Positions 236-63,863 of a DNA stretch of 64,000 nt are shown piece by piece (position 1 is the first letter of the stretch; each line of letters opens with the position of its first letter). The translations under genes were made by a program, and so were the position numbers. The stretch is from IMG/VR virus record IMGVR_UViG_3300012988_000001, positions 124,001 to 188,000 of that record; one strand, written 5' to 3'. A model generated the notes under the pieces. That model ran no database searches. It saw only the letters and a program-made list of their open reading frames with translations, and was not told the origin of the DNA.

Positions 236-266
236 TTGGGACAAAAAAGTAAAAATGTGATATACT
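236..266 (+). promoter_or_regulatory. Phage pre-replicative promoter (GGGACA-N17-TATACT, extended -10)
   Basis: TTGGGACAAA 236-245, TGTGA, TATACT 261-266; one of six copies of this motif. Confidence 0.8.
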
Positions 267-297
267 ATAGGTATCTGATGATTATTGAGATGAAATT

Positions 298-741
298 ATG
301 CGATATACTTGCGGAATAATATTTTATCGTGATGGTCAGATACTTATAGGACATACAACCGGACAAGATCATTGGGACTTACCTAAAGGTAAAACTGAAG
401 GTGAAGAAACATATAAAGAAGCGGCTGTTCGGGAGTGTTATGAAGAAACTGGTTTTGAGATATCCGAGAAGGATTTACTTTTTATTGGTGATGTATCATA
501 CCGAAAAGGAAAAAGACTTATATTGTTTTTCTATACCGCTAGATATAAGCCTGAACCTAGTGAATTGAAATGTATCAGTACTTACACTAATAAGTACGGA
601 CAGACTAAACCAGAATTGGATAAGTTTAGATACATTGATGTTGAGGACTGTGAATTGTATTTGACTAAACGAATGTGTAGCAGTATTGTCAAAGCTGTTA
701 AACAATTCCAGAAAAATAAAGGAAAAGAGAATGGAAGTTAA
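298..741 (+). CDS. NUDIX hydrolase (NudE-like)
   Basis: Nudix box GKTEGEETYKEAAVRECYEETG, preceded by WDLPK. Confidence 0.92.
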   Translation: MRYTCGIIFYRDGQILIGHTTGQDHWDLPKGKTEGEETYKEAAVRECYEETGFEISEKDLLFIGDVSYRKGKRLILFFYTARYKPEPSELKCISTYTNKYGQTKPELDKFRYIDVEDCELYLTKRMCSSIVKAVKQFQKNKGKENGS

Positions 742-1003
742 AATCTACGGACGCCTAACTGGTTGCCCTTATTGCACAAATGCGAAAGCAGTTTGTGAAC
801 AAAATAAATTCGATATGGAATTCATTGATATGGTTTCCACTGGTATGACTAAAGATGATCTATGTGAAATCGTAGGTAAGCCAGTAAGCACTGTTCCACA
901 AATCTTTGTTGATGGTGAATATGTTGGTGGTTACACTGAATTCGTTGCTCACCTCCGCTCTCTAAACGAGAAGAAAAAAGAAGATGACACAGACGATCAA
1001 TGA
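731..1003 (+). CDS. Glutaredoxin
   Basis: CPYC active site, TVPQIF and GGY motifs; start moved to ATG 731 (AAGGA upstream). Confidence 0.93.
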   Translation: MEVKIYGRLTGCPYCTNAKAVCEQNKFDMEFIDMVSTGMTKDDLCEIVGKPVSTVPQIFVDGEYVGGYTEFVAHLRSLNEKKKEDDTDDQ

Positions 1004-1232
1004 TTTTCATGCACAGTGTAAAGCACGTGCTGAAGAGTTAGCCAAACGATTGGGGGTAGATTTTCAACCTCTAGATGTAAACTCTATTGAAACTGCTGCA
1101 CGGAAACGTATGGCAGCACTCATGAAATATCGTGAGCGAAAAGAAGAGTATGATTCTCTTCTTGAAACAGTTTTCAAAGTACTAAGTCCAACGGAAGTGG
1201 TTGAAATTCTACGAAATACCCGTAATAAATAA
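984..1232 (+). CDS. Hypothetical protein
   Basis: 82-aa ORF with phage-like codon usage, overlapping the end of glutaredoxin. Confidence 0.7.
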   Translation: MTQTINDFHAQCKARAEELAKRLGVDFQPLDVNSIETAARKRMAALMKYRERKEEYDSLLETVFKVLSPTEVVEILRNTRNK

Positions 1233-1279
1233 TTATGAAGGAACAATCCTTCATGTTATAAAATTTTGGGAGAAATACT

Positions 1280-1522
1280 ATGATTAGTTTTCGTGATAAA
1301 TTAGCTCAAGGCATTTTCGAATGCAAACCAACAGTTGCTGACATTCCAAAGAAATCAGCATTTTTAGGAACAATTACAGAAGATGGTTTCTGTGATTATG
1401 ATGTACCTGAAGATACTTGGTATCTAAGTAAATCAACTGAACGTAGCAATCGCCTCCACAAAAGTACAATAGCCAGAAAACACCGCAAGGAAATGAAACG
1501 AATTCGTTTTGGTTCCGAATAA
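1280..1522 (+). CDS. Hypothetical protein, basic C-terminus
   Basis: GGGAG SD, 80-aa ORF followed by a terminator. Confidence 0.75.
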   Translation: MISFRDKLAQGIFECKPTVADIPKKSAFLGTITEDGFCDYDVPEDTWYLSKSTERSNRLHKSTIARKHRKEMKRIRFGSE

Positions 1523-1528
1523 TAATTT

Positions 1529-1556: not shown

Positions 1557-1570
1557 CATCCGAGGTAACA

Positions 1571-2047: not shown

Positions 2048-2070
2048 AAACAAACAAAGGATTGACAAAA

Positions 2071-15614: not shown

Positions 15615-15645
15615 TTGGGACAAAACGACAACCTTGTGATATAAT
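15615..15645 (+). promoter_or_regulatory. Phage pre-replicative promoter (GGGACA-N17-TATAAT)
   Basis: GGGACA 15617-15622, TGTGA, TATAAT 15640-15645. Confidence 0.85.
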
Positions 15646-15680: not shown

Positions 15681-15721
15681 AAGACACTGGCAGTTAGAAG
15701 TAACACAGTGTCTTTTCTTTT
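15681..15721 (+). terminator. Terminator/attenuator-like hairpin in the 5' leader of the MoxR gene
   Basis: AAGACACTG...GTTA-GAAG-TAAC...CAGTGTCTT followed by TTCTTTT. Confidence 0.6.
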
Positions 15722-15781
15722 GCTCAAGGATTGAGTGACAAACCAAACTATTTTTTATAACCCAAATGAGGAAATATATCA

Positions 15782-17110
15782 ATGAGCAAATCTAACGACC
15801 TACTAAACATGACTCTATCTCCTAAACAAACTCTAGTTGCAATGGCAGTTGCAGACCGTGTTCAGGATAGTCTAATGCTTTGGGGTGCACCCGGCATTGG
15901 TAAGTCAGCGGTAGCACTACAGTATGCTAATAAGATGTATCCACTACGTAAAGACAACCTAGATAAGCTAGAGTTCATGCGTAACCAAATCGAAGAAGAA
16001 GAAGATGCAGCACAGAAAGCACAGCTACAGCGTGAGTACAAAGCATTCGATGCTAAACTACTAGACCAAGATAGCAACTTCATCGACTTCCGTCTATCAC
16101 AAATCGACCCAACCGACCTACGTGGTATTCCAGTACCAGAGAAAGTGTACATCGGTATGGATGGTAAGTCTCTAATCGAGTCTGACCTAAAAGAAGTCAA
16201 AGAATATATCGCTGAAACTGCCGTAGTTTGGGCTGCACCAAAAGTACTAAAACTACCAGCGGATTGGAAAGGCGTTATCATGTTTGACGAAATCAACTCT
16301 GCAATGCCAATCGTTCAGGCAGCTTCTTATCAGCTAATCCTAGACCGTTGCGTTGGTGAGATGAAACTACCTAAGACTGCACTAATCCTAGCAGCAGGTA
16401 ACCGTGAAAATGATGGTGGTGTAACCTTCACCCTAGCAACTCCACTACGTGACCGTATGACTCACATTGAAATGGAGCCAAACCATCAGGATTGGATTGA
16501 TGATTACGCAATCGGCAAGCGTCTAAACGCAGCAACCGTAGCATTCATCAACAACACCGGGTCTAAGTACTTCAACACACTAAGCCCTAACGATCCTTCT
16601 CACTCTGGCGGTACTTCCCCACGCTCTTGGGAACGTGTATCTCAGTATGAAGATCTAAACGATGGTTCTATCGATAAAGCTGTTTATCGTGCACTAATCG
16701 CAGGTCGTATCGGTGAAGGTGCAGCAACTGTGTACATTGAGTACGTAGAAAACGTATCTAAACTACCAGATACTATGAAGATTCTAAGTGGTGAAATCAA
16801 AAAGCTAGACGAAAATCTAGATATCTCTGCAAACTACTTCGTGTCTCTAAACCTAGTGTATAAGATTATCGATCTATACCAACAAAAGACCGAGAAGAAA
16901 ATCGAAGTTGAAGAATGGAGCCGCCTAGCGAACAACTTCATCATCTTCCTAGAGAACAACTTCTCTGAATACTACGCAGAACTAGCTGTACTATCCATTC
17001 GTACACTAACTCAAGCACGTGTTCAACTATCTTACAAAGAAGTCCCAGCGTTCCAAGACTTCGTTAAACGTTATCAAGACCTAGTGCGTCGTGCACGTTC
17101 CCTAGGCTAA
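15782..17110 (+). CDS. MoxR-like AAA+ ATPase (AAA_5 type)
   Basis: Walker A GAPGIGKS, DFRLSQIDPTDLRGIP, Walker B IMFDE, AAGN sensor, PLRDR, SPRSW. Confidence 0.92.
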   Translation: MSKSNDLLNMTLSPKQTLVAMAVADRVQDSLMLWGAPGIGKSAVALQYANKMYPLRKDNLDKLEFMRNQIEEEEDAAQKAQLQREYKAFDAKLLDQDSNFIDFRLSQIDPTDLRGIPVPEKVYIGMDGKSLIESDLKEVKEYIAETAVVWAAPKVLKLPADWKGVIMFDEINSAMPIVQAASYQLILDRCVGEMKLPKTALILAAGNRENDGGVTFTLATPLRDRMTHIEMEPNHQDWIDDYAIGKRLNAATVAFINNTGSKYFNTLSPNDPSHSGGTSPRSWERVSQYEDLNDGSIDKAVYRALIAGRIGEGAATVYIEYVENVSKLPDTMKILSGEIKKLDENLDISANYFVSLNLVYKIIDLYQQKTEKKIEVEEWSRLANNFIIFLENNFSEYYAELAVLSIRTLTQARVQLSYKEVPAFQDFVKRYQDLVRRARSLG

Positions 17111-18611: not shown

Positions 18612-18637
18612 AAAAGGCACATTGATTGTGCCTTTTT
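18612..18637 (+). terminator. Rho-independent terminator
   Basis: AAAAGGCACA/TGTGCCTTTT stem. Confidence 0.85.
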
Positions 18638-18644: not shown

Positions 18645-18675
18645 TTGGGACAAACTCAAGAAAATGTGCTATAAT
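18645..18675 (+). promoter_or_regulatory. Phage pre-replicative promoter (GGGACA-N17-TATAAT)
   Basis: GGGACA 18647-18652, TGTGC, TATAAT 18670-18675. Confidence 0.85.
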
Positions 18676-18713: not shown

Positions 18714-18959
18714 ATGAGTACTGAAAACCTAAAAGACATTTCGATTGATATCGTTGATATCATCAATGCTGCTAAAATCATGGAACAAGCTGTTAAAAAT
18801 AACGCTTTCTCCGTTGAAGATCTAGTTGAAGTGACCCCAGTTGTTGCTCGCTTTATTGCAGTAGCAAACCAACTAATTGAACGTCATAATGCAGAAGTTG
18901 AAGCACAAGAAGCAGCCGATGCCGAAGCAGGTCCAACACCTGAAGCAGATGGGGAGTAA
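18714..18959 (+). CDS. Hypothetical protein
   Basis: GGAG SD, first gene after the promoter. Confidence 0.8.
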   Translation: MSTENLKDISIDIVDIINAAKIMEQAVKNNAFSVEDLVEVTPVVARFIAVANQLIERHNAEVEAQEAADAEAGPTPEADGE

Positions 18960-20204: not shown

Positions 20205-20555
20205 ATGTCCGGGAACACCGAAGACTACGACAGTGGTTATGAAGAAGGGTATGATGCTGGAAGAGAAGCAACATACGACGAAGCCTATAAAGATGGCGAA
20301 CAATATGGCTACAAGGATGGTCATGAAGCTGGTATGATTACTGGCAAAGAAGAAGGTTATGAATCAGGCAAAGAAGAAGGTGACAAAGCAGCAAGGGAAG
20401 AACTTGGAAATGTTATTGATAACTTACAACAAGAACTCTACAACTACCGTGCAATGATTCGAACCATGAAAGAACAAATAAAAGATCTAAGGATAGAGAA
20501 TGCAACAATTACACGAACTATATCAAAAAGTACTAGAGAAAGGAACTTACAGTGA
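20205..20555 (+). CDS. GxxxG-repeat (FliH/Yae1-like) coiled-coil protein
   Basis: GYEEGYDAG...GKEEGYESGKEEG; start moved to ATG 20205 (GAGG SD). Confidence 0.7.
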   Translation: MSGNTEDYDSGYEEGYDAGREATYDEAYKDGEQYGYKDGHEAGMITGKEEGYESGKEEGDKAAREELGNVIDNLQQELYNYRAMIRTMKEQIKDLRIENATITRTISKSTRERNLQ

Positions 20556-36204: not shown

Positions 36205-36246
36205 TATTTATTTTTTTGGGACAAACGAACATTTATGTGATATAAT
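36205..36246. promoter_or_regulatory. Composite divergent promoter: late TAAATA (minus) + GGGACA-N17-TATAAT (plus)
   Basis: TATTTA 36205-36210, N7, GGGACA 36218-36223, TATAAT 36241-36246. Confidence 0.85.
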
Positions 36247-44500: not shown

Positions 44501-47500
44501 CATCTAGTAGTGACCATACACCACCATTAAATTGAGTTACAGATTGAACTGAACCGAATTCAGATCCAAACTTAGCACTTGCAGTACTAGGAGATACAGA
44601 AATATATTCACCACGTACTGGAGATGTTAAACTCCAACTAACAAAATCTTTACCGATTTGTGTCCAATCCTGAATTACACCGTCTGTGTTTTGGTCTTCA
44701 AAAATCCAACCTTGTGCTTCTAGGAATTTACCATAAGAACAAAGGAAAGTGTAAACATCTTGATAAGAATTGAATACAGTTCCGTATGCATATTCTTGGA
44801 CTTTAGTAGTGTAATCTGAATAGGTAACAACAACACGATTTCCATCCGTGTATGTAGTTTTCTTTCCATTTTTATTAGGAACTAGAGTTTTAAATGTTGC
44901 CCCAACAAGGTCATAGCCATCAAGTTGATAAGCTGAACCATTCCAAGTGATTTTTACAGCACTTAGAGTTTCAGTACGTATAGCAGAACTCTTAACTAGA
45001 CCAATATTTTGACTTTCGCTGGAAATTAGACCAAATGATTCAGAATAGAAACTAAGTTGATCTTTCTTGGTGAATGCACCAAGTTTGTGACCAATATTAA
45101 TATAAGATGAGCGTAGCACATCACCATATTTTTTAGTTACATCCATATTCTGATACAATAGATGATCAGTAATAGCCATTTGGTAACCTAGTACTCTGTT
45201 ATTTTGTTCACCGTTGACTAATGTATTACTATTGAAGTTTAAACGAATATTTGATTCACCATATAGGAATTGAACATCATCTGTATAAACTTTCTTTAAA
45301 GTACTACCACGTGTATCATAGAAGTAGTTTGCAAATTGTGCAGGTTTAGCACGATATAGTAACATTGCTTGGTCATATGCAAACATAGCAGTGTTCATGT
45401 ATGTGAATTCCATATCACCCATATCACCATAAGCCCAAGGCTCTGCACGGTGATTTAGAGCACCTGAAACTAATCCAAGAACCTCTGGTGCAATCAATTC
45501 ATAAGTATAAAGAGTATCACCATTAGACGCAGTTCCGTTAGGAGTTAGGGTGAATGGTTGTTTACCAAAACGCTTATATTTGTCATACTGTCCAGCACGA
45601 GAGCCGAATAGGATTTTACCTAGACTTGCATCACCTTTGAATGTTCCAACATCCCATAGTCCACTAGGAACTAGATCGCCATTTTCATCAACTACTTCAG
45701 CCGTATAAACCGTAATAGATTCAGTTTCAGATAAACGAACAATAGTAGGTTCGTATTCTTGGTTCCACCAATCTGGACGTTGAGCAAAACCAAACATTTC
45801 CCACGGATGAGTTGATGGGCGGTAAGTACCGAACATGTCAGTATAAATTCCACGCCAAGAACCACGTGCTGGAATTGTAGTAGGAATCCCGTCTACAACA
45901 TAAGTAGTTCCAGTATAGTTCCAAGTTAGCCAATTAGATTGGTCATAGTTGTTTGTACTGTTATTAATTCCGTTAGTTGCAATAAAATTAATGTAACCAC
46001 GTAGTAAAAGAGTGTTGTACTCTGTTGCACTATAATCTGTATCTTGGAAGAATGGTGTAGGGAATAGATCACTAGCATCCATTGGTGGCTGATAATCTAC
46101 AACTTTAAATGCATTATCAATACTATTGAAAATACGATTTTCAAGTTCATAGATAACATCATCCATTTTGTCAATGCCGTTAATTACTTTATAGGATTTT
46201 GAAATAACACCAGTATGGCTTACGTTGTAACAACCTAATTCTTTACCAGCATACATATACGTAGCTTTCTGTGGTGAGAATGCTTTTAGAATACCCATAA
46301 ATTGCGGAGTCGGTGGAATGAAGGTACGACTCGTACCTACAGTACTACCAACGCTATCAAGATAGAATGGGAATGTATTGTTTTTACCAACATTGATAAT
46401 GTCAAATACTGCATCTACAATATTAGATGCACTGTTTGATAAGAAACCAGATTTATCATCTTCATATAGATTAATCATTTGGGTATTAAATTTGTTTAAG
46501 AAACGGAAATACTCATTTTGTAAGAACATGAATGCTTCGAAAAGATCAATATTTTCGTTAGCAGTGTTTAGCATTAGTGGAAGCATAGATGCTTCATTCT
46601 GAATAATAAACGTACCAACTGAGTTATCAACCAAGCCAGCTTCTAAACGTTCTTCATAGTTATTGAAATCGTTAACACTACCAGTAGTAATGTTTTTACC
46701 TACAACATCACGAAAATGAAGAGAATAATCACCCTGATGAATGTATTTGATAGATTCATTATATGGGTTATTTTTCAAGTTCGTTGGGATTTCATATGCA
46801 CCTAGATTAAAATCAGGAACAATATCTTTACTATAAGTACGGATTGTTAGTACTGAATCTTCATCTAGATTGATTGAAGAATCGATTACGATTTCATTCA
46901 AATAACCGTTACTATCAATTGTTTTAGTGAATTTATCAGTTTCTTCACCATTAATAATAACTTCTAAAATATCATTAGGGTTATTGGTATCAATTTTTTG
47001 TGCCAATTCGAAATTATGGTTATACACATCATATGCAACAGCATTATCATTGGTTCTGTGCCAATCTAGGAAAGTACTGTTTGGTGCTTTATAATATTTG
47101 TATGTAGAATCTATATCACGAACATATGCATACATATTTTCTAGTGGATATTCGAAGTTTTCCATATCATTTACAGTGTCAAATACACGGTACATGGATG
47201 TTTTGGTCATTTCTGGAACTTGGAATACATACTGTTTAGACACGTCTTGAGAACGAACCCAATCAGTTTTTAGGTTCTGTGTAAATTCTCCATTTTCTTC
47301 GCCAATAACATTATAATAGTACAAACCCGGAATTTCAGTGATTACACCTAGTTTATCAAATTCATAACGAACACTTTGAAGGAAGTTTTCAAATACATAG
47401 TAATTGTAAGAACTTAGTTCAACATTAGCACCATAAATTGAGCTAAAATTGTAATCGAAGTTAATTTTAAGCCCAAATAGTGATGAACCACTGAAAGTTG

Positions 47501-48611
47501 AACTTGGATAAATTTGACTATCACTTAATTTGTTACCATTGCGGTCATACAATTGGAATAGAGGGAAGGTATTAACACTATCTTTATTCTGTGCACGTGT
47601 CCACATAGTCCCTGTCCAGTACATTGAAGTATTGCCATAGGTATTACCTGATTTTACCAATACTACGTCACCAACTTGTGGCTCACCACTTGGACGGGTT
47701 GGGGTTTCTTCATCTTCATCTAATGCTAGACCGTATACGCGTGAACCATCATCCATAGACTTAATATAAACCTTATAGATACGGTTGTTTTCGCCGGGGT
47801 TACCAATACTTGTGAATAACACACGATCACCAGCTTTTAATACGAATCCATCAACACGGATATTATTGGATTGATTTTTGTTAACGATATCTTCTGGTTT
47901 CACTGAATCAGAGAGATAGTCAACTACACCACGGAACTTCGTACCGTAGTTTAATAGTTCAATATTTTTATTGTACTCAATAATTGGAGCCTGTGCACGA
48001 GCAAAACGCGTGTCTTGGGCCAATTCGTCAGTTAGTACTGTACCATCAGGTAGAGTTTGGCCTACAGTGTACCAGAAGTTTTGTAATGACCATTTGTTGC
48101 CATTTAAAGCACCACGTTCCATTACAACATAATCAGGAGCAACACCATATTCGTTATTAGTGTCCCATAGATATGTACTATAGTTAATTAGTTTGTTAGG
48201 GTTAATTGGTGGAGTCCAAGAATAAAATTTACCATTGAATAGGCGGTCTTGGTTTTCCGCTAGGCAGCCGTAATGCTCTAGATAACCAACTAGATCTTCA
48301 TAAAATTGTAGGCTGCGAATGCTTAGGTCTTCATTTTTTGATACGTAAGCAGGACTAAGCTGATATGCTTGTCTTTGTTCTGTTAATTCTTTGATAAAAA
48401 TCTTACCGGAGGCAGCAGGGGAGCTACTATCACCGATATATCCATCGACAATCTCTTGTTCAGCAGGGTTGAACCACTGTTGAATAATATCATCACAAAA
48501 AGTTTGGATCTGCTCTAAGCCTTGCATCCATTCTGGTAGTCTTTTTATGAATAATTTTTTATTAACAGCTTCAGCTACTTCTGAGGGCTGGAATTTAAAT
48601 TCGTTAGCCAT
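38592..48611 (-). CDS. Giant (3339 aa) virion structural protein, probable baseplate wedge component
   Basis: Own late promoter, follows gp6, aromatic/beta-rich, EEVKPYRTKIR motif; function inferred from position. Confidence 0.75.
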   Translation of the reverse strand: MANEFKFQPSEVAEAVNKKLFIKRLPEWMQGLEQIQTFCDDIIQQWFNPAEQEIVDGYIGDSSSPAASGKIFIKELTEQRQAYQLSPAYVSKNEDLSIRSLQFYEDLVGYLEHYGCLAENQDRLFNGKFYSWTPPINPNKLINYSTYLWDTNNEYGVAPDYVVMERGALNGNKWSLQNFWYTVGQTLPDGTVLTDELAQDTRFARAQAPIIEYNKNIELLNYGTKFRGVVDYLSDSVKPEDIVNKNQSNNIRVDGFVLKAGDRVLFTSIGNPGENNRIYKVYIKSMDDGSRVYGLALDEDEETPTRPSGEPQVGDVVLVKSGNTYGNTSMYWTGTMWTRAQNKDSVNTFPLFQLYDRNGNKLSDSQIYPSSTFSGSSLFGLKINFDYNFSSIYGANVELSSYNYYVFENFLQSVRYEFDKLGVITEIPGLYYYNVIGEENGEFTQNLKTDWVRSQDVSKQYVFQVPEMTKTSMYRVFDTVNDMENFEYPLENMYAYVRDIDSTYKYYKAPNSTFLDWHRTNDNAVAYDVYNHNFELAQKIDTNNPNDILEVIINGEETDKFTKTIDSNGYLNEIVIDSSINLDEDSVLTIRTYSKDIVPDFNLGAYEIPTNLKNNPYNESIKYIHQGDYSLHFRDVVGKNITTGSVNDFNNYEERLEAGLVDNSVGTFIIQNEASMLPLMLNTANENIDLFEAFMFLQNEYFRFLNKFNTQMINLYEDDKSGFLSNSASNIVDAVFDIINVGKNNTFPFYLDSVGSTVGTSRTFIPPTPQFMGILKAFSPQKATYMYAGKELGCYNVSHTGVISKSYKVINGIDKMDDVIYELENRIFNSIDNAFKVVDYQPPMDASDLFPTPFFQDTDYSATEYNTLLLRGYINFIATNGINNSTNNYDQSNWLTWNYTGTTYVVDGIPTTIPARGSWRGIYTDMFGTYRPSTHPWEMFGFAQRPDWWNQEYEPTIVRLSETESITVYTAEVVDENGDLVPSGLWDVGTFKGDASLGKILFGSRAGQYDKYKRFGKQPFTLTPNGTASNGDTLYTYELIAPEVLGLVSGALNHRAEPWAYGDMGDMEFTYMNTAMFAYDQAMLLYRAKPAQFANYFYDTRGSTLKKVYTDDVQFLYGESNIRLNFNSNTLVNGEQNNRVLGYQMAITDHLLYQNMDVTKKYGDVLRSSYINIGHKLGAFTKKDQLSFYSESFGLISSESQNIGLVKSSAIRTETLSAVKITWNGSAYQLDGYDLVGATFKTLVPNKNGKKTTYTDGNRVVVTYSDYTTKVQEYAYGTVFNSYQDVYTFLCSYGKFLEAQGWIFEDQNTDGVIQDWTQIGKDFVSWSLTSPVRGEYISVSPSTASAKFGSEFGSVQSVTQFNGGVWSLLDDENTGIRPYEIQTTRLGNVFTVRLADDVDKRMALIRVSLVAYEHAVVFDDVTIFGDSIYIPVYGSVQELIRMYGYVTGSWNGRLEAPGFIVLEAGTLPDFETLVTDFQHYYDVEEPVSDVSLRDLGRHLIGYQSRDYLTRMITSEPARVNFYKGFIKDKGSNQVLERVLRVSKSYNTDEYKALQEWAFKVGTYGNIYGKKSLQFQLINNEFKQQPQLITFDKNATSNGNGNNIVYFGEQGEDSRWITRPKGNFAFPMRSGRSDNINLPDIGPVTLDEIDYSTKDFTTAYTDRLSYMAKSGEVPNSVWMLQDMSDTWNIFELINTNIKLTAITAIPSEDNMPTQFCKLTLSAAHGMVDGDYFYFVDQTNYMPDLLKAEMQYYNSGSAANELIVPVNIAIDMTFSAPQPVLYRYESRFATSADKDSYINKKYSFAAPESTLFEKATTYNSLTNVTELYINLYDPINGILPGPAMTNVTYTGAHDPALYNSNGEEEMAWASDKVGTVWWDTREAYFVDYTRPIYDSNGNVDNEATLEYKRVNWGKILPHGDINIYEWVESPVEPYDWDRYCDEQAKLNKTENEYVPSGTALEENYSEFIIYDTHTQSYVRKYYFWVKNGIYVPQVKNRDKSCQEISRIIRDPLALNTPWYAPISETSFIMSDMQYEVTDDKSILTISYKEDQDDVVKHEQYQLCKEGDSYNFNPEIWNSLWNSLMGQETLLNGQVQELHYPQTELGLGSSKVWFKDIIEARRTFVDSANDIYRHINMTTNTVVMNDVFNVKTLQTNPNEVGFKVLTYNNQLVIATNEQKFLENDAVLVSTNGTLPSPLNSTSVYFVHYDDDGYIHLMNNPSSSGTAITITLENKGEGQHSMIKQSDYIATLGTSLDMTQYWSLADWYDVGYDEYTEYTSEISLDIADTKNYQVGDIIRIVDADGVWTLYRKDYSRNVSLWTAIGRQNSTLQLNNQLYNNYTQYNEDGELTNVEINVRKALALLKNSFDMHQSDVVFDMVKYVHTEQQVVDWVFKTSYIFIVGLDQSLKQNYSNSEDLIGQIVSYFEEVKPYRTKIRSQIEQKTSDSDEINGLLNDLDPTGYIFVNGKWVKTQSDIWDYEYAQFNTVTNKWEIHGSLPSDFELPNRRFQEIDVIMHYDNVQCVPDEDMPAAAILDDVNKQFQSNEQDFLTKGSHYKLQRYEYTFPVANESQINNAIGSILTQKYPDFNMSTSVAAGIQAMYETLEQDVPATEQFTKDVISATNEVLSSDDSIDIMQKYRMFNTLSNRLRLYTSYDIDAIEDQVDCPFKGISIDDNPNTRLPFGFAPSNGENFGYVMHTRELFDKFVSMAKAQNPTYSDNDIYFYLAHEYGLYCWMIETTEDDGIGGVTINTDHYNDTLLVLTAMRNSYYKDNSDHYAFAEAILDNRDFDAFCMVMVPRKLVSIRNDAGDYFTVPFNQSLEDFMQDQFITQGDNVFVGEPNLDDLPMDKNNPLYSDYQQIMTSFNSNVYYDDMNSFDNLALESQTKRIELSAIDTVNTTQDSVFIDISELNPNKQNMSQLRFTVDGYSYDAANMPQLKDQGNFQVEGFITLNPYNKAEAVVSIPRYAEAIALMDRTNMYHDEIKYVNHVYDVINVNGVVRLGSNHGLKVGDNVMVFTPEGKDYDAVAADGTFHTILTENNIRTGNRPTMFKVTAVSGRNVTIGGLVFSQTYSTNGSEWSAVSDHTSITVLRVTSFNDAEFNAGSYVKYAANRSYAVDAMDYDVFYDVMLDGGEYTDGFSDDDYDVWYISNEIIDGVDHGYYQPIYGEGVLGELVRTKMTDSLQIFVYEFNTSTIQPVLVPATDTTDAYWTYALPLVDDVYVTSPSRVTVITNDSVENITVVSQPTNVGSVSVDGNVVSGANSTEGDVISLNGEQMLLRKNGNALRAINGTVENYYPDGYLGTGLNLGKEDKMVDYANNYPVIPLSTYSSSLQIPGTILPTLIKG

Positions 48612-48687: not shown

Positions 48688-51600
48688 TTAATTACCAACG
48701 TTGATGTTACTCTTAGCTAGTGAGCTAATTATGGAAACATTATCAACTGTTGCAGTGCTTACGAAGAGTTGGTCCGGTTCACAAGGAATCTCGAACAATT
48801 CACCGAATTTACTGTTAGGGTTGTTAGGAACCAATACTACTGTACTGATTTCAGTACTCAATTGCAAGTGAATATATGCACATAACTCAGTAAAGAAGAA
48901 TGTTTCACCAAAGTTCCAGTTATCAACTTGGAAGAATGTGTTTGTAATCTCAATTACACGTTGACGTATCTCATCATCACTCAATGTACTATTTGGAATT
49001 TTAACAACTTTGATATCTGCTTGATAAGATGGTGATGCACTGTTACCAAATAGAGGAACATAGTTTGCACTGTGCCAAATAATACTATCACTAATTACAA
49101 TCTTCTGTTCAACGTCCTTAAACATGTCTTGTAGTTCAACACTGGTTGGTGGTTTAGGGAAAATACCTTGTGCACCATTCTTAATCCACAAATCAATGTT
49201 AGTTTTATAAGAATTTGTTAGTACATACATGTCGATTAGGTTAGTTTTACTTGGGTCAATACGATTATCATCAGGTGCATAATGTTTCCAATGATACATA
49301 ATACCAGTTCTAGCATTATACACAAATGAATATTCAGAACTTACATCTTTGTATCCATAGTATTCTAATTTCTTGTTTTCTGCTAGAGATGAATTACCAC
49401 TATTGATAATAGCACGATAAAACGCTAATTCTGGTGTCATTGTAACTGTATCATCAGGTAATGTCATGTTTGCCATTAGTGTATTCAAACGATCATTATT
49501 ATTACCTACAGTTTGTTCAATAAAATATGATTTTCCATCATATACAAACCCAATTGTAAATCCAGTCCCTTTTCCGAACAAATCACTCATAGATGTACTA
49601 CGTAATTGAACGTTGCGTAAAAATTCTTGACGTTTATATACATTAGTCTCAGCCTGTGCATCGGATTCAGTATATGTCCATGAACTATCTAGTACTGTGA
49701 AATCTGAACTTGGTAAATCAAGAATATCGATTGTAAAATCACTATTCTCGCGGAATACTAATATCCCACCATATTTCAATGCATCTTCACCTGTATATTT
49801 CGGTACTAATGATGCAAATTGATTAGGTTCCAATGGAATACCATTACTATCAACATCCTTGCTCGTGATTATAACACGTGAACCATCCAAATAGCCGTTT
49901 TCCTGCTGAATTGTGTCAAGAATTTGGAAATCAACATTTTCACCCATTCCCAAGTTACTAGTAGGGCTAGCATTACATGCTAAAATGTCAATTTTATCAG
50001 CTTGAACCGTACCGGTACTAATATCAGATATCTTTTTAGTACTAACAAAGTAGAATTTAACTTTATCACCACCGACAAAGATATAATTAACACCATACCC
50101 ATCAAATTCCCATGCTTCTGCTGTATATTGTACACGAACTAAAATAGGATAGACAGTGCCATTATAAGTAATTGTTTCATCAGCGGTGCTTACTTGAATA
50201 GGAACCCAAGTTAAGCTGTTGGTGTCGTATATAATAACAAAATCAGTCTTTTTATTCATCATGACGGAAATATTTTGTATTTCAACTGAATTAAACTGAA
50301 CACGATACGGTTTAATATACGAATAAATTGTCATTCCATTTTCTATCGGTTGTGAAAGAACATAAAAACCATCATCTGCTTTTCCAATAATACTAGCCCA
50401 ATATCCGTTAGTGGTATTCGTCTTAAAGTTAATAAGAGTACCTACTTCGAAGCCTTCTTGAACTTCTCCAGACACTTTAATTTGACCATATGTATTTTTT
50501 GAGTACTGTGAATTATAAACAGGGTTCCAAATTTGGTTATTTGTTGGATATACACTGTTTGCATCCCATTCTTGGTAAGTTTGTATTACCGAAGTCTGTC
50601 CAATTAGTGGTTGAATATTATCAACGATAATTGTTTCATTTGATTTCACGGTTGGAAGTAAAACACTATTGCGTGAGGTTGATTTCTCTTTATACATCGC
50701 ACCATCATCTGCAAAAACATCAGTATTTTGATATTTTCCAGTTGGATCAGTGATATCGATAAATCTTGATTGTCCAGAATATAAACGGTTCAATGCTTTA
50801 GCTTTTAGTACTGTATTACCCAACATTAGAGGTGCAATATTATAATCTTCACCGTTTACAAAACGGTTTTGTGTATAATACATCTGTGGAGCACGGTCTT
50901 TAATCTGATCAATAGTTTCAGCACTTTGTGCAAGGCCAGTTTCATATTGAAGTGAGAATTTAATATCTAAAGTACTATTCTCAAATTCAGTTTGTGATTT
51001 AGTACGGTAAACATATTTGATACTTTTATTTTGGATATCTGACGTTTTAATTGTATATGTTTCACCATTACTAACGCGATACCAAGTACGGAATGTTCCA
51101 CGTGGAACTACACCACTTCGCTGATCAGGATATTTGATACTAATCTGATCATTATCACGAGTAATTACTGAAAAGATTGTTTTCTTCTGTCGGTCAACTG
51201 AGTTATATGCAATACTTTCCATTGATGGAACTTTAGTCCATTTAGTACGGACAATACCATCTTCATTAATTTCTTGTACCCAAACATCAGTTTCATTAAT
51301 GTTGTTTGTGTTAACTGCCTGAATTCGGTTTTCTATACGAACATCATATTGATAATCAGTATAAGAAAGTGTCCCTTGTTTGAAATAAACAAAGAAACCA
51401 GTATTAGGTGAAGCAAAACCATTACCATCATTACGATAAATGATGTACTTCTGATCTTGTGGTTCAGGATGGCGTTCATCAGCACCAATACTGTTGATAT
51501 CCGGGTTAACAACTTCAAATGTGGTACTCGTGCCATTAATGTTTGCAGTAAATGGAATACTTGGAGCACTCATTGGAATAGTATTCATTCGATAAAGCTG

Positions 51601-52152
51601 GTTAGATACACCATTTATTGAGTTTTTCTTAACTGGATTACCAAATTGGTTAGAACTGATAAAGGAACTGTTCATTACTAGAATAAAGTTTTCATACCAG
51701 TTATTATCTGCTGGATCATTCCAACGGATAGTTTTATTTTTTAGAGATTCGTTAAAGCTGTTACGAATATCTTGGTTCGTTTTGATTTCTGTTAATTTTG
51801 CAAGACCACGACCCGGATATGCACGTTTTGGTGCATACGAAATCATCTTGGCAAGTTTTAGTACTGAAGCACGGCGTTCAGCAGTGTCGAGGAAGTTTTC
51901 TCGACTGTTTAAATCCATACGGAAAGCTAAGTTCTGTCCTAGCATACTAATAGTATCTAAGATGAAGATAAATTCTGAGTTTTCAATCCAGTCATTAAAT
52001 GAATCTGGATAAGTTAAACTTAAGTAATGAATCATACTTTCACGGATTGTGTCAAAATCGTATGCAGTTAAGTTAATCTTAAAGAAACTTTCATATACTT
52101 GTTTCCAGTTCTCAGCAGCGTAGAGATTGGATTGTCGTTTTTGTTGTGTCAT
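48688..52152 (-). CDS. gp6: Baseplate wedge subunit (T4 gp6-like)
   Basis: DFDTIRESM, ENFLDTAERRASVLKLAKMISYAPKR, AETIDQIKDRAP...QNRFVNGEDY. Confidence 0.9.
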   Translation of the reverse strand: MTQQKRQSNLYAAENWKQVYESFFKINLTAYDFDTIRESMIHYLSLTYPDSFNDWIENSEFIFILDTISMLGQNLAFRMDLNSRENFLDTAERRASVLKLAKMISYAPKRAYPGRGLAKLTEIKTNQDIRNSFNESLKNKTIRWNDPADNNWYENFILVMNSSFISSNQFGNPVKKNSINGVSNQLYRMNTIPMSAPSIPFTANINGTSTTFEVVNPDINSIGADERHPEPQDQKYIIYRNDGNGFASPNTGFFVYFKQGTLSYTDYQYDVRIENRIQAVNTNNINETDVWVQEINEDGIVRTKWTKVPSMESIAYNSVDRQKKTIFSVITRDNDQISIKYPDQRSGVVPRGTFRTWYRVSNGETYTIKTSDIQNKSIKYVYRTKSQTEFENSTLDIKFSLQYETGLAQSAETIDQIKDRAPQMYYTQNRFVNGEDYNIAPLMLGNTVLKAKALNRLYSGQSRFIDITDPTGKYQNTDVFADDGAMYKEKSTSRNSVLLPTVKSNETIIVDNIQPLIGQTSVIQTYQEWDANSVYPTNNQIWNPVYNSQYSKNTYGQIKVSGEVQEGFEVGTLINFKTNTTNGYWASIIGKADDGFYVLSQPIENGMTIYSYIKPYRVQFNSVEIQNISVMMNKKTDFVIIYDTNSLTWVPIQVSTADETITYNGTVYPILVRVQYTAEAWEFDGYGVNYIFVGGDKVKFYFVSTKKISDISTGTVQADKIDILACNASPTSNLGMGENVDFQILDTIQQENGYLDGSRVIITSKDVDSNGIPLEPNQFASLVPKYTGEDALKYGGILVFRENSDFTIDILDLPSSDFTVLDSSWTYTESDAQAETNVYKRQEFLRNVQLRSTSMSDLFGKGTGFTIGFVYDGKSYFIEQTVGNNNDRLNTLMANMTLPDDTVTMTPELAFYRAIINSGNSSLAENKKLEYYGYKDVSSEYSFVYNARTGIMYHWKHYAPDDNRIDPSKTNLIDMYVLTNSYKTNIDLWIKNGAQGIFPKPPTSVELQDMFKDVEQKIVISDSIIWHSANYVPLFGNSASPSYQADIKVVKIPNSTLSDDEIRQRVIEITNTFFQVDNWNFGETFFFTELCAYIHLQLSTEISTVVLVPNNPNSKFGELFEIPCEPDQLFVSTATVDNVSIISSLAKSNINVGN

Positions 52153-59156: not shown

Positions 59157-59197
59157 TATTTATAATCTTGGGACAAAATGAAAAAATGTGATATAAT
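59157..59197. promoter_or_regulatory. Composite divergent promoter: late TATAAATA (minus) + GGGACA-N16-TATAAT (plus)
   Basis: TATTTA 59157-59162, N7, GGGACA 59170-59175, TATAAT 59192-59197. Confidence 0.85.
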
Positions 59198-59247
59198 AGT
59201 GAGGTGGGACACGGATCGTCCTATGAATTTACATGGAGTGTTACAAT

Positions 59248-60093
59248 ATGATAACCAAACCGAAGCGTAAGAAATATTTGAATAACGCTGATTTACTAAG
59301 AGAAATTCATCTCAGTAAAATGTCATACTGCTGGCTCATTGATGAGTCGTATAGCATGTATGATTACATAGTCTTTGATGTTAGTGAGATTGATGAAGAA
59401 TTGCTTGAGAAAGCAAGTGCTGCACGTATCAAACGTCTTAACAATGAAACAATTGAAAATATTCGTTCAACACAGGGTCTTTCTGCTAAAAAAGCTAAAG
59501 AATACGCTGATGCACACGGATTAGTACTAACCACTGTACCTATTGATGAAGTTGTTATTCGCGTAATTACCGATGAACATATTCCCGATGAGGGTACTGG
59601 TAAGATTCGTGTTAACTTCGAACCATTCAAACATTACATCGTAGATGATAATGCCGTTTTTTATGAAGTTGCTCGTTCACACTGGCTAGGTGATACCGAT
59701 ACCGGGGAGTTTTGTTTAACTCACGGAAGAATGACCAATGAATTAGGAAAAATGTTCATTAAACTTGCAGAAGAAATTTCCCATAAAACTAATTACCGAA
59801 ATTATACGTACTTAGATGAAATGATGGGTGATGCAAGAATACAATTAGTCAAAAACGCATTGCTTTTTAAAGAAAGCATTTTGTATAAAAAAGACAAACC
59901 TGCTGTTCAATTAAATCCTTTCTCTTACTATACATCTTTCGTCAATAATGCATTCCGTTCTGTTTTGAATACAGAAAAGAATGTACGCAATATTCGTGAT
60001 GACTTACTTGAATTAAATGGCTTTACGCCAAGTCACACACGACAAATTGAAATTGAAATGAAAATGATGGAAGGTAAGAATGGCTCTATTTGA
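59248..60093 (+). CDS. gp55: Late-transcription sigma factor (T4 gp55-like) with a large insertion
   Basis: YLNNADLL, LGKMFIKLAE...NYRNYTYLDEM.GDA, NPFSYYTSFVNNAF; ATG 59248 has a GGAG SD. Confidence 0.9.
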   Translation: MITKPKRKKYLNNADLLREIHLSKMSYCWLIDESYSMYDYIVFDVSEIDEELLEKASAARIKRLNNETIENIRSTQGLSAKKAKEYADAHGLVLTTVPIDEVVIRVITDEHIPDEGTGKIRVNFEPFKHYIVDDNAVFYEVARSHWLGDTDTGEFCLTHGRMTNELGKMFIKLAEEISHKTNYRNYTYLDEMMGDARIQLVKNALLFKESILYKKDKPAVQLNPFSYYTSFVNNAFRSVLNTEKNVRNIRDDLLELNGFTPSHTRQIEIEMKMMEGKNGSI

Positions 60094-61111
60094 TAAAGCA
60101 GTAACGTTCACTGATATTCATCTAGGATTGAAGAATAACAGTAAAGAACATAACACAGATTGCGTTAACTTCGTAAAATTCATGATTAATGAAGCCAAAG
60201 AACGTGATATAAAAATTTGTATCTTTATGGGAGATTTTTTCCATAACAGAAGTAACGTTAATATCAGTACTCTAAACTACGGTCTAGAAGTAATGAACCT
60301 ACTTAACGATAACTTTGAAAAAACATACTTCCTTGTCGGAAACCATGATATGTACCATAAGAACAAACGTGACATTACTAGTATTAACATGGCACAGGCG
60401 TTCACCAACATCGAATTCATTAATAAGATGCAAACAATCGATGACTGTACTTTCATTCCTTTTATGATTGATGATGAGTACAAACAATTGCCATCACTAA
60501 CCAGCAAATATGTTTTCGGTCACCTTGAATTACCCGGTTACCTTCTAAACAAAATGGTTGAGATGCCAAATCATGGTAAAGAAACACAAGAGTCTTTCAA
60601 CGGCTGTGAATATGTCTTTAGTGGTCACTTCCACAAACGACAATCTAAAATCACACCAAGCGGTACTCGCGTAATTTATACTGGCAACTGCTTCCCTCAC
60701 AACTTCTCAGATACTTGGGATGATGCACGTGGTATTATGTTCCTAGAACATGGAAAAGAACCACAATTTAAAGCATGGGAAGATGCACCTAAATATAGGA
60801 CTTTCACTCTTTCGGAATTACTTAATGAGCCTTCTTATTACGTTCAAGACAACGTAGTTGCTAAAGTTCAGATTGATATTCCAGTAAACATGAATGAAAT
60901 CTCTTATATTCGAGAGGTATTCACTAAGCTATACAATGTTCGTGAATTCAACATTGTAAACAGCAGGAAAGCACTACAAGAGAGTTTAGAATACGGTGAA
61001 GTGGAAACAAGTACTGAATCAGTAGATGAAATCGTACTTAAACAAATCCAAGAAATCGATTCTCCTATGTTTGATAAGAATCTTCTAACACAAATTTATA
61101 CATCACTTTAA
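60080..61111 (+). CDS. gp47: Recombination nuclease subunit (gp47/SbcD/Mre11)
   Basis: DIH, GDFF, GNHD, GH, SGHFH metallophosphoesterase motifs. Confidence 0.95.
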   Translation: MALFDKAVTFTDIHLGLKNNSKEHNTDCVNFVKFMINEAKERDIKICIFMGDFFHNRSNVNISTLNYGLEVMNLLNDNFEKTYFLVGNHDMYHKNKRDITSINMAQAFTNIEFINKMQTIDDCTFIPFMIDDEYKQLPSLTSKYVFGHLELPGYLLNKMVEMPNHGKETQESFNGCEYVFSGHFHKRQSKITPSGTRVIYTGNCFPHNFSDTWDDARGIMFLEHGKEPQFKAWEDAPKYRTFTLSELLNEPSYYVQDNVVAKVQIDIPVNMNEISYIREVFTKLYNVREFNIVNSRKALQESLEYGEVETSTESVDEIVLKQIQEIDSPMFDKNLLTQIYTSL

Positions 61112-61122
61112 TGGAGTAAAGA

Positions 61123-63279
61123 ATGTTAACCATAAAACGAATTACAATGAGAAACTTCTTCTCATTCGGTAATGCACCACAAGAACTTGAATTTCAAGGT
61201 AGAGATATCTCTCTAGTACTAGGCCAGAACAACGATGTGGTTGTTGAAGGTGGTGATAGTGCTGGTCGTCGGAATGGCGTGGGAAAATCTGCTATAATTC
61301 AGGGACTAGTATTCGGGTTATATGGTAAAAGTGTTGGTAATGATATTAAAATCCCTAACCTAGTTAATAAAACTAACACGAAACAGTGTGAAGTAATTGT
61401 CGAATTCGAAAAAGACGGTCAAGAATACCGTATAGAGCGTGGGCGTAGTCCCACGTATTTTAATTTCCTAACTATCAAGGATGGAAATGTAATAGATGAT
61501 GATTCTAGAGGTGAAAAGAAGGATACCCAAGAAGAACTCAATGAGATTCTAGGTATTTCCCAGACACTTTTCGAACACATTGTTGTACTAAACGCCAACG
61601 TAGACCCATTTCTATCACTATCTGCACAAAAGCAGCGTGATATGATTGAAGAACTACTTGGTATTACCCAACTTACTGAAAAAGCAGAGCTACTTAAGGA
61701 TATGCAAAAGGATTCTAAGAAGACTGCTGAACAAGAGAAGTTTAAAATCGATACATTGATTGCGTCCAATGAACGTATTCAGAAAAGTATTGAGAATCTT
61801 CAAACACAAGCCAATACTTTCGAGTCAAATAAACTCAATAAGATTGAATCTCTTAAAACACAGTTGACAGAGTTTGATTTTGCTGATAAATTTGGTTTTG
61901 AATCATTATATGATAGTGCTAAAGAGATGGAAGAAGCAATTGAGCATAATAATAAGCGTTCAGTACTTGAGAATCGTTTGAATTCTTTGATGCAGAAGCG
62001 TGAACAATATGACCAACAGCTTCAAACCAACAAAGTGTTAGTGCTAAACAAGATTAATGAGCTAAAAGCTATTGATATTAGTGCGGAATTAGCATTACAT
62101 GAAGAATTAGATGTGTGGTATCAATTAGAAGGTATTCTAAAACAAAATACCAGTACTAAAGTGTTCAAAACACAGACTATCAAACAAACTGAGTCTGAAT
62201 TAGTACGCTTGAATGATTCCCTCACTAAAGAATACAACAAATTGAAAACAATTGAAGATAGCAAATGTCCAATGTGTGATGGTGAATTGAAAAATGACCA
62301 TAATCATTCAGAAATGATTGTTAAAATAAAAGATACAATTGAGGATTTATCTTCTCAGATATTACAAGCGGAATATAACATTTCTGTTATCACTGAAGAG
62401 ATTGATGACCTTGAAATTTTTGAAATGCCACCCAAACCAGTGACTAAGTACAGTACTCTAGCAGAAGCTAAACTTCATGAGCACATGTTAGCTGAGAATA
62501 CAGCGAAATATGAAGCAGAAGAAGTGAATATCTATGACGAGGAACTAATCAGTACTTATACTGAGTTGGAAGGAACTGAATTGAAGGAATATGACGTAGT
62601 ATTCAGTACTCATGAAGTACAGCAGCTTGAAATGAAGTATAAGTCCCTAAAGGAACAATTACAGCGTGAAGAAAGTAATGCTAACCCATATTTCGACCAA
62701 ATTGAGACATTGAAGACTGATTCATTGCAGGTTGTAGACTATAGTCTATATAATGAGATGGAAAAGCTAGCTACACACCAAGATTTCTTGGTTAAGCTAT
62801 TACTCAATAAAGATTCTTATGTTCGTAAGCGTATTATCGAGCAAAACATCACATTCTTGAATAGTAGATTACAATTCTACATCGAGCAATGTGACTCTGA
62901 ACACTTTGTGAAGTTCATGAACGACCTAAGTGTTGAGATTACCCTAAATGATCAGTCCTATGACTACAAGCAATTGTCTCGTGGGGAGCGTACACGTGTA
63001 AACGTGGCCTTGTCATTGGCATTTAGAGACACTTATGAGTCATTATACCAAGGAATCAACCTTATCATGATTGATGAGATGATTGATGTGGGTCTAGATC
63101 CGTCTGGTATCACTCGTATGTGGACAATCTTTGCTGATTTAGCAGTAATTCAGCGTAAAAACGTCTTTGTTATCTCTCATAAAGAGGAATTACTAAGTAA
63201 GACGGACAATATCTTGAAGATTGTCAAAGAAGATGGTTTTAGTACTATCGAATATTCATCACTTGATGACATGTTTTAA
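61123..63279 (+). CDS. gp46: Recombination ATPase subunit (gp46/SbcC/Rad50)
   Basis: NGVGKS Walker A, coiled coil, CPMC zinc hook, LSRGE signature, IMIDE, ISH. Confidence 0.95.
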   Translation: MLTIKRITMRNFFSFGNAPQELEFQGRDISLVLGQNNDVVVEGGDSAGRRNGVGKSAIIQGLVFGLYGKSVGNDIKIPNLVNKTNTKQCEVIVEFEKDGQEYRIERGRSPTYFNFLTIKDGNVIDDDSRGEKKDTQEELNEILGISQTLFEHIVVLNANVDPFLSLSAQKQRDMIEELLGITQLTEKAELLKDMQKDSKKTAEQEKFKIDTLIASNERIQKSIENLQTQANTFESNKLNKIESLKTQLTEFDFADKFGFESLYDSAKEMEEAIEHNNKRSVLENRLNSLMQKREQYDQQLQTNKVLVLNKINELKAIDISAELALHEELDVWYQLEGILKQNTSTKVFKTQTIKQTESELVRLNDSLTKEYNKLKTIEDSKCPMCDGELKNDHNHSEMIVKIKDTIEDLSSQILQAEYNISVITEEIDDLEIFEMPPKPVTKYSTLAEAKLHEHMLAENTAKYEAEEVNIYDEELISTYTELEGTELKEYDVVFSTHEVQQLEMKYKSLKEQLQREESNANPYFDQIETLKTDSLQVVDYSLYNEMEKLATHQDFLVKLLLNKDSYVRKRIIEQNITFLNSRLQFYIEQCDSEHFVKFMNDLSVEITLNDQSYDYKQLSRGERTRVNVALSLAFRDTYESLYQGINLIMIDEMIDVGLDPSGITRMWTIFADLAVIQRKNVFVISHKEELLSKTDNILKIVKEDGFSTIEYSSLDDMF

Positions 63280-63285
63280 AAACTA

Positions 63286-63310
63286 AAGGGAGCATTAGCT
63301 CCCTTTTTTT
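63286..63310. terminator. Bidirectional terminator
   Basis: AAAGGGAGC-ATTA-GCTCCCTTTTTTT; the EndoVII stop lies within it. Confidence 0.85.
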
Positions 63311-63789
63311 ATATTAAGCATATCCAGCTTACCTTCTTTTATTAATTTACGAGCTTGATTGGCTCTTTTCTTAACATTACTCTCTGGAACAACGCCAAAT
63401 GACTCTAAAATGTCGCATTGTTGTTTAGCAGGTAGTGCTTTATACTTTTTAACATCAACTGATAGTGCTGTATGATGAATTACCATCTCTTCTTCAGGGA
63501 TAGATCCGTTTCTCTCTAAGTAATCTGCTAAATTTCTTAGTACTTCATAAAGTGGCTTATCAGTTAAGTGTTTCATGTACCTATTAAAGCTGTTAGTTAC
63601 TTTCCCTTCCCATGCGTTGCATTCATTTTGTAATACTTCACGACAATGCTGGTGGCCTTGGTGATAGTGATCAAGTACTGGTTTGGTAATTACTTCTTTT
63701 GTGATTGGATCTATGCCATTCTGCTTTTTCAGCAAATCGTTACGGTACTTTGCCGCATCCTTTGCATCCTTTAATCGTTTTTTACTCAT
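63295..63789 (-). CDS. gp49: Endonuclease VII-like Holliday junction resolvase
   Basis: QNG....PVLDHYH...REVL..ECNAWEGK...LRNLADYLE; C-terminal ..LESFG.....N...R. Confidence 0.85.
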   Translation of the reverse strand: MSKKRLKDAKDAAKYRNDLLKKQNGIDPITKEVITKPVLDHYHQGHQHCREVLQNECNAWEGKVTNSFNRYMKHLTDKPLYEVLRNLADYLERNGSIPEEEMVIHHTALSVDVKKYKALPAKQQCDILESFGVVPESNVKKRANQARKLIKEGKLDMLNIKKGS

Positions 63790-63821
63790 AATAGTACTTC
63801 CTTAAAATAATTATTATGTAG

Positions 63822-63863
63822 TATTTACATTTTTGGGACAAAACCAGTTTTATGTCCTATAAT
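63822..63863. promoter_or_regulatory. Composite divergent promoter: late TAAATA (minus) + GGGACA-N17-TATAAT (plus)
   Basis: TATTTA 63822-63827, N7, GGGACA 63835-63840, TATAAT 63858-63863. Confidence 0.85.

Follow-up and report, generated by a model that had tools for sequence, protein, structure and literature searches.

A phage-specific promoter class with a lineage-dependent -35 box in Rak2-like jumbo phages, and its candidate sigma-70-family reader

We analysed a 64,000-nt stretch of viral DNA (IMG/VR record IMGVR_UViG_3300012988_000001, positions 124,001 to 188,000; the window, i.e. G000:124001-188000) that carries six copies of a phage-specific promoter element, together with the phage-encoded system that may read it. 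This element, hereafter class-ii, consists of the box TTGGGACAAA, a spacer of about 10 nt and a -10 module of the TGTSnTATAAT type. G000 denotes the whole virus record, of 366,160 bp with direct terminal repeats, which is, by its DNA similarities, a Rak2-like jumbo myovirus. Its nearest deposited relatives by this measure are Salmonella phages 7t3, SE_PL and Munch and Klebsiella phage fENko-Kae01 (~83% identity), and remoter ones include Erwinia phage Hallingskeid, Cronobacter phage GAP32, Pectobacterium phage CBB and the 121Q/PBECO4 coliphages. The + strand carries about 85% of the coding sequence, and the main minus-strand block, i.e. the structural gene cluster, is inside the window. Six whole genomes were compared with G000, namely those of GAP32, G001 (the closest IMG/VR relative), Serratia phage BF (G003), G006, PBECO4 and K64-1, giving seven genomes in all.

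Class-ii promoters in the window and in the genome

Each of the six elements of the window (Table 1) opens with an exact copy of the decamer on the + strand, in which GGGACA starts 2 bases after the first letter. The composite pattern TTGGGACAAA-N9/10-TGTSnTATAMT gave 6 matches for 0.00 expected (100 dinucleotide shuffles of the window). GGGACA stands 17 nt before the -10 hexamer except at site 59168, where the distance is 16 nt; the hexamer itself is TATAAT at five sites and TATACT at site 236, and TGTG precedes it everywhere except at site 63833, which has TGTC (TGTCC subtype). These sites, spacings and TGTG counts agree exactly with the initial annotation. Its statement that GGGACA occurs at six places holds for the copies embedded in the decamer, the window total being 16 for 18.7 expected; as GGGACA alone is not enriched, the signal resides in the decamer and its -10 partner. 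All six sites are intergenic and face a + strand gene or non-coding DNA, and the units first named downstream of them were all recovered: NUDIX-glutaredoxin, AAA-VWA, the ThyA cluster, a ClpA/B-like gene, gp55-SbcD-SbcC and a non-coding stretch.

The window sites carry a canonical -10 (TATAAT, or TATACT at site 236), and none of the six has a canonical -35 (TTGACA 16-18 bp upstream): the hexamer at 17 bp is GGGACA, with 4 of 6 consensus matches. An invariant GG in place of TT, as initially worded, describes this hexamer, which keeps GACA, but is imprecise in that the TT is retained (TTGGGACA).

The genome-wide search that the initial annotation had called for returned 19 exact decamers on the + strand and none on the - strand, with 1 match for the reversed control. 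With up to two box mismatches, 34 class-ii sites were retrieved; they span the 38-362 kb part of the genome, are all on the + strand and, with few exceptions, intergenic. Their consensus is aaAaayTTGGGACAAA-N10-TGTGATATAATA, often with an A-rich tract upstream of the box. TGT at -17 to -15 is the invariant part and is usually extended to TGTG, so that TGTG is not the fixed element it was first taken for; a perfect TATAAT with TG is found in 26 of the 34 sites.

Three promoter populations are present in the genome. As the initial annotation had supposed in calling the class phage-specific, the class-ii sites stand apart from a canonical population of 104 near-consensus TTGACA-N16-18-TATAAT promoters on the + strand (~10 in shuffles of the same genome), which are densest at 0-35 kb and 260-366 kb. 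In these two regions, they form a dense early-promoter array, in which many canonical promoters share a ...CCCATCTTA/CATCAAC-like start region and several bear a hairpin in the spacer. The third population consists of ATAAATA-type motifs ahead of minus-strand structural genes, among which are open reading frames (ORFs) of 3339 aa (window 38592-48611, -) and 1154 aa (48688-52152, -). The T4-type motif TATAAATA was tried as late motif and rejected, with merely 11 occurrences in the genome; the shorter ATAAATA fits the regions upstream of the structural genes.

Outside the window, class-ii sites head genes for a NadR-like cytidyltransferase/NUDIX protein, NrdD, a small regulator with DNA polymerase, two exonucleases, SSB with UvsX, primase with a DnaB-like helicase, MazG and the topoisomerase II large subunit. 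tRNA genes follow class-ii promoters at G000:273803-273931, 276746-277003, 298786-299136 and 311749-312121, and a tRNA-Ser begins ~9 nt past the -10 of site 273803. In all, 15 tRNA genes were counted, one of which, an ARAGORN call at 301949-302034, has an unusual anticodon of four bases (ctgg). The gene content of the class suggests a delayed-early or middle regulon.

Eight G000 sites have TGTCC for TGTGA: 187833 (window 63833), 214740, 276746, 305404, 311749, 318653, 332395 and 362374. They contain an inverted repeat between the box and the -10 flank, GGACAAAA-N5-7-TTTTGTCC, which is absent from the closest relative, G001, where the orthologous sites have TGTGA. The idea of a palindromic operator (GGACAAAA...TTTTGTCC) was therefore demoted to a rival explanation. 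This subclass could reflect a second reader or a variant in timing.

Table 1. Coordinates of the class-ii promoters and associated features (window positions, unless preceded by G000)
Feature	Position	Strand	Context
Class-ii promoter, TTGGGACAAA-N10-TGTGATATACT	236..266	+	Heads NUDIX (298-741) and glutaredoxin (686-1003) genes; the orthologous promoter of 6 relatives has its own lineage box
Class-ii promoter, TTGGGACAAA-N10-TGTGATATAAT	15615..15645	+	Precedes a short leader, then AAA (MoxR-like; 15782-17110) and DUF2201/VWA (17175-18605) genes
Terminator-like hairpin (GACACTG...CAGTGTC, then T run)	15681..15722 (hairpin 15681-15714, T run to 15722)	+	Separates promoter 15615 from the AAA gene
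Class-ii promoter, TTGGGACAAA-N10-TGTGCTATAAT	18645..18675	+	Directly 3' of terminator hairpin 18612-18636; heads orf81 (18714-18959) to ThyA (20500-21432)
Late-type ATAAATA motif	36205..36211	-	Adjoins the box of 36216; ahead of virion structural gene 34675-36174 (-)
Class-ii promoter, TTGGGACAAA-N10-TGTGATATAAT	36216..36246	+	Heads ClpA/B-like ATPase gene (36287-38557)
Class-ii promoter, 9-nt spacer, TTGGGACAAA-N9-TGTGATATAAT	59168..59197	+	Heads gp55-like, SbcD/gp47 (60080-61111) and SbcC/gp46 (61123-63279) genes
gp55-like late sigma factor gene	59233..60093	+	phrog_12791 5.9e-148, phrog_234 5e-18; first gene behind a class-ii promoter
Class-ii promoter, TGTCC subtype, TTGGGACAAA-N10-TGTCCTATAAT	63833..63863	+	Heads structured RNA
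Conserved structured RNA, 5' part	63904..64000 (97 nt in window)	+	Core G000:187904-188370, extending 370 nt past the window end
Structured RNA paralogues	G000:40920-41386, 107710-108182, 269320-269760, 332473-332866	gene strand	Found by nhmmer
Sigma-70-family protein gene, 322 aa	G000:325777-326745		Outside the window; Pfam regions 2 and 3 above cut-off

Several neighbours of these promoters deserve mention. The class-ii promoter at 36216 and the ATAAATA motif back to back with it probably form a divergent middle/late pair. The DUF2201/VWA gene behind site 15615 encodes a DUF2201 metallopeptidase/VWA protein. The hairpin in the leader behind that site is kept through compensatory changes in all seven genomes (stems GACACTG, GCACTGA, GGAACTG and GGACTG), its fold energy being by itself unexceptional (z -1.2). 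Because of this conserved hairpin, promoter 15615 may not simply head the MoxR-VWA pair, and may instead yield a short RNA of ~75 nt or be attenuated. The gp55-like protein gave no match to Pfam or NCBIfam models.

Lineage turnover of the box and a phage sigma factor

Three promoter classes have been predicted in CBB and GAP32 (Buttimer et al. 2017, PMC5259590, citing Abbasifar et al. 2014). The presumed early region has RpoD-like promoters; a further 18, termed 'divergent RpoD-like', keep the usual -10 but show TGAAACG where TTGACA would stand, and are located mostly before DNA-synthesis genes and also before the gp55-like gene; and an ATAAATA motif lies ahead of the structural genes. The same paper mentions a phage sigma with regions 2, 3 and 4; it assigns no reader to the divergent class and mentions neither lineage turnover nor RNA genes behind the promoters. 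The class-ii sites share with the divergent class the sigma-70-like -10, the non-canonical -35, ~18-30 copies on the gene strand, orthologous positions, the TGTGnTATAAT module and a location before DNA-synthesis genes and gp55. The two differ in the box, which in GAP32/CBB is TGAAACG or TG(A/G)AACG, one base nearer the -10, and here TTGGGACAAA; TGAAACG is not the box at any listed class-ii site of this genome, where the box is TGGGACAAA. We thus assign the window motif as the lineage-A version of a class already predicted in GAP32/CBB: the version of the box is new and the kind is known, a point on which the initial annotation needs correcting. Our literature search found no paper giving this box version, and the papers on RaK2 and fENko-Kae01 contain no promoter discussion.

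Among the genomes compared, TGTSnTATAAT occurs 14-41 times per genome, almost solely on the gene strand, and across the group the box in front of it depends on the lineage: TGGGACAAA, TGAGACA, TG(A/G)AACG or TTGAACAA. G000 and G001 have TTGGGACAAA, whereas GAP32, BF and G006 have (A/T)TG(A/G)AACG, one base nearer the -10. At the orthologous promoters before NUDIX, orf81/ThyA, ClpA and gp55, the box is swapped in place between lineages, PBECO4 having rTGGGACAA and K64-1 TTGAAyAAA. A pattern search of four more phages retrieved TGGGACAAA in Munch (29 sites), TGGGACA in Hallingskeid, TGAGACA in coliphage EJP2 and TG(A/G)AACG in XbC2. The exact decamer occurs 23 times in G001 and 0-1 times in each of eight remoter relatives, whereas the canonical TTGACA promoters are kept at 56-109 per genome in all seven genomes. 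Phages of the same host differ in their box, as seen for EJP2 and PBECO4 on E. coli and for lineage A (Munch) and lineage C (SD phages) on Salmonella. Since the box shifts in concert at ~30 sites per genome, in the same or close Enterobacterales hosts and with a constant canonical class, there is a strong case that its reader is encoded by the phage. In GAP32, TGGGACA, which forms the core of the box in the sister lineage, was found 0 times on the gene strand and 2 times on the other, for ~11 per strand expected by our own base-composition estimate, which could reflect avoidance or a general scarcity of GGG.

A protein that could fulfil this role is the sigma-70-family protein of Table 1. It matched Sigma70_r2 (PF04542) at 51.9 bits (6.8e-14), Sigma70_r3 (PF04539) at 37.4 bits (2.7e-9), TIGR02937 at 53.6 for a cut-off of 42.9, and NCBIfam RpoD_Cterm over positions 3-204 of 238. 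A PDB profile search retrieved SigA, RpoD and RpoS at ~1e-28 (SigA 7e-28), and Foldseek ranked sigmaS and sigmaA chains at the top. At the C-terminus, region 4.1 and the first helix of the region 4.2 helix-turn-helix align to SigA/RpoS (E 0.003), and in the AlphaFold2 (AF2) model this part folds into four helices, the turn containing an inserted beta-hairpin (predicted local distance difference test, pLDDT, 67-83). Directly upstream of the gene lies a canonical TTGACC-N17-TATTAT promoter, within a dense cluster of canonical promoters.

Orthologues of this sigma are present in every relative. Compared with the GAP32 protein, region 2 is 64%, region 3 51% and region 4 28% identical, i.e. conserved regions 2/3 and a diverged region 4, which parallels the conserved -10 and the diverged -35 of the promoters. 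The recognition helix starts with SSRTSLHRCY in lineage A, TNRCTIHRRY in EJP2, KSRSSIHRKY in PBECO4, TSKATLSRRY in GAP32/CBB/BF and TVRGTLHYKF in K64-1. The three sigmas with an xRxxxHR helix (lineage A, EJP2 and PBECO4), mutually 35-44% identical, all go with boxes ending in GACA, and the xKATLSR helix of the GAP32/CBB/BF lineage goes with a box ending in AACG. An orphan sigma stands beside an orphan promoter class; as both are conserved in the group and change in parallel, the sigma is the most parsimonious candidate for the reader, and we consider it fairly probable that this protein reads the class-ii box.

A related question is whether the reader might be injected with the phage DNA. In the proteome supplement of fENko-Kae01 (PMC11218385), the sigma of purified virions is gp55-like (CDS_273, 281 aa) and not sigma-70-like, and therefore lends no support to injection of the reader. 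It is unusual to find a late sigma in purified virions, and carry-over may explain it.

A candidate structured RNA family behind class-ii promoters

The DNA that follows promoter 63833 is 90-100% identical between G000 and G001 and 70-82% identical between G000 and GAP32 (60-nt windows), i.e. above the neighbouring coding DNA. With nhmmer, five copies were found in G000 (at 40.9, 107.7, 187.9, 269.3 and 332.5 kb) and 3-5 in each of the six other genomes, i.e. 31 copies in the seven genomes, always on the gene strand. The element is ~450-540 nt long and consists of conserved blocks interleaved with variable hairpins, the lengths of which are not multiples of three; no conserved reading frame was found in it. 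All 31 copies lie 36-90 nt behind a class-ii promoter bearing the box of its own lineage. In PBECO4 and K64-1, one RNA copy is located directly 3' of the sigma gene.

RNAalifold proposed 65 pairs, 45 of them with compensatory double changes. In the alignment, 96.8% of cells pair, a share that falls to 37-47% on sliding the partners by 1-3 columns; the covariation score reaches 0.632, compared with ~0.1, and none of 500 shuffles reached the observed values. Rfam 15 gave no gathering-score match in the window and none at E<=0.01 in 27 kb of loci, the element itself remaining at chance level (E 2-10). By blastn, the element was retrieved from 62 phage records, all Rak2-like, at 4-5 places each, where it is unannotated or lies under tiny 'hypothetical' ORFs; in IMG/VR, a strict core pattern matched solely contigs of 345-378 kb or fragments of them. 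Two known candidates were considered and rejected: ncRNA001/ncRNA002, defined by RNA-seq in the related phage PA5oct, are not homologous by nhmmer, and a resemblance to RNase P or hammerhead motifs was dropped as no model match supported it. We propose the element as a candidate new large structured RNA family within the class-ii regulon.

Proposed cascade, rival explanations and significance

In the scheme that we favour, the host sigma-70 holoenzyme would read the ~100 canonical TTGACA-N17-TATAAT promoters, one of which precedes the phage sigma gene. The phage sigma would then bind the host core RNA polymerase, its regions 2/3 reading the -10/TGT module and its divergent region 4 reading TGGGACAAA, and would turn on the genes for nucleotide metabolism, replisome and recombination, ClpA, tRNAs, the five structured RNAs and the gp55-like late sigma. 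Finally, gp55 would read the ATAAATA-type late promoters of the structural genes on the opposite strand. Such a cascade from host sigma-70 through the phage sigma to gp55, in which the reader and the timing are deduced from sequence, seems to us the more probable course of events. The broader picture, i.e. a Rak2-like sigma cascade with co-evolving region 4 and -35 box (TGGGACAAA, TGAGACA, TGAAACG, TTGAACAA) and a middle regulon expressing a new large structured RNA class, is advanced tentatively, at slightly less than even credence.

Several observations weigh against the phage sigma as reader of such a regulon. The Pfam region-4 models (r4, r4_2) gave no match to this protein, its AF2 model is of low overall confidence (mean pLDDT 57.7) and was used solely for the secondary structure of the C-terminus, and the covariation of sigma and box amounts to ~2-3 independent evolutionary events. 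In any case, sigma factors in general tend to be least conserved in region 4. The gene behind one class-ii site is called virion structural protein by PHROGs. Moreover, by a consensus scan the class-ii sites qualify as good promoters for sigma-70, with TG and 10 of 12 positions matching, so that host sigma-70 may fire many of them regardless of the box.

Three other explanations were weighed. Host sigma-70 might read the -10 and TG, the box TTGGGACAAA being read by a phage DNA-binding activator or appropriator, MotA-like in function yet unrelated, which is the version given in the initial annotation. The fixed distance of the box from a perfect sigma-70 -10 does recall the MotA box, the lineage turnover implies a phage-encoded reader here as well, and upstream of the DNA polymerase gene there is a gene for a small 'transcriptional regulator' (phrog_639). 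That gene, however, is itself behind a class-ii promoter, AsiA/MotA homologues were not found in the genome, and the conserved phage sigma would be left without a promoter class, with the tracking of the box by its region 4 unexplained. We regard this explanation as unlikely: a phage-encoded reader, which that annotation had put forward, is borne out by the box turnover, but the phage's own sigma is a likelier candidate than an activator or a remodelled host sigma.

It is likewise improbable that these are plain strong extended -10 promoters, used by host sigma-70 from the start of infection, with the box serving a phage repressor or timing factor as its operator, or having another role at the DNA level. 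Such a role would agree with the perfect TATAAT plus TG of 26 of 34 sites, with GACA at the -35 position and with the inverted repeat of eight sites, which suggests a dimer site. Yet G001 lacks the inverted repeat and has TGTGA at all sites, the TGTCC sites keep the box without the TG that would make a -35 dispensable, the box has the strict orientation and spacing of a -35 element, and the upstream A-rich tract resembles an UP element. That the 31-bp unit marks no regulon but is a selfish or recombination-related repeat, such as a homing site or mobile promoter cassette, appears very improbable. The near-identical sequence at many loci could be read in this way, and the five sites joined to RNA paralogues may indicate that promoter and RNA were duplicated together; against it, spacer and flanks vary between sites, the sites are orthologous across genomes more than 25% different in DNA, in which functional elements alone are kept, and they are nearly all intergenic and co-oriented with genes.

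The sigma-based scheme has partial counterparts in well-known systems. T4 middle promoters combine a MotA box (TGCTT core, near -30) with a sigma-70 -10 and depend on sigma appropriation by AsiA/MotA. As in T4, a phage element here replaces the -35 and the sigma-70 -10 is kept, replication and nucleotide genes are concerned, and the late sigma comes before the late genes. Unlike in T4, no MotA box is present, its TGCTT core being absent from the 34-site alignment, which has TTGGGACAAA instead; no homologue of AsiA or of the MotA C-terminal domain was found (PF09010 and PF09158 had no match at E<=1 in the whole genome, from which very divergent analogues could escape), and the phage has its own sigma-70-family protein. 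The initial suggestion of a middle system that does not use the MotA box is thus sustained as regards the box, and its 'middle' timing is suggested by gene content. Bacillus phage SPO1 uses a sigma cascade, with gp28 for middle genes and gp33/34 for late genes. As proposed here, a phage sigma likewise would replace the host sigma on the host core and read a phage-specific -35/-10 pair as one step of a cascade; the differences are that this sigma is near group 1/2 in regions 2/3 and a host-type -10 is kept, that the host is enterobacterial, and that the last tier is of the T4 gp55 type. Sigma-70/sigma-A promoters may also carry an extended -10 (TGn) or a 'TRTGn' -16 region, and extended -10 promoters need no -35. 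TGTGnTATAAT fits the TRTGn form, but here TGT never varies, not even at sites with another base for the G at -14 (TGTCC), and a conserved non-consensus -35 box is kept.

To our knowledge, transcription in Rak2-like jumbo phages (~350 kb genomes) has never been studied experimentally, and many of these phages are therapy candidates against E. coli, Salmonella and Klebsiella. The novelty lies in the series of lineage-specific boxes paired with sigma region 4, and in the structured RNA family. The comparison offers a testable wiring diagram of three promoter classes and two phage sigmas, and it assigns promoters to dozens of intergenic regions and locates a structured RNA that more than 60 deposited genomes now leave unannotated or hide under spurious tiny ORFs. 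If the proposed RNA family is real, it would represent a new functional class, e.g. a ribozyme, a ribonucleoprotein scaffold or a host-takeover RNA, present in more than 60 phage genomes at 3-5 copies each. The natural series of sigma region-4/-35 pairs could shed light on the evolution of -35 specificity and be a source of orthogonal sigma/promoter parts.

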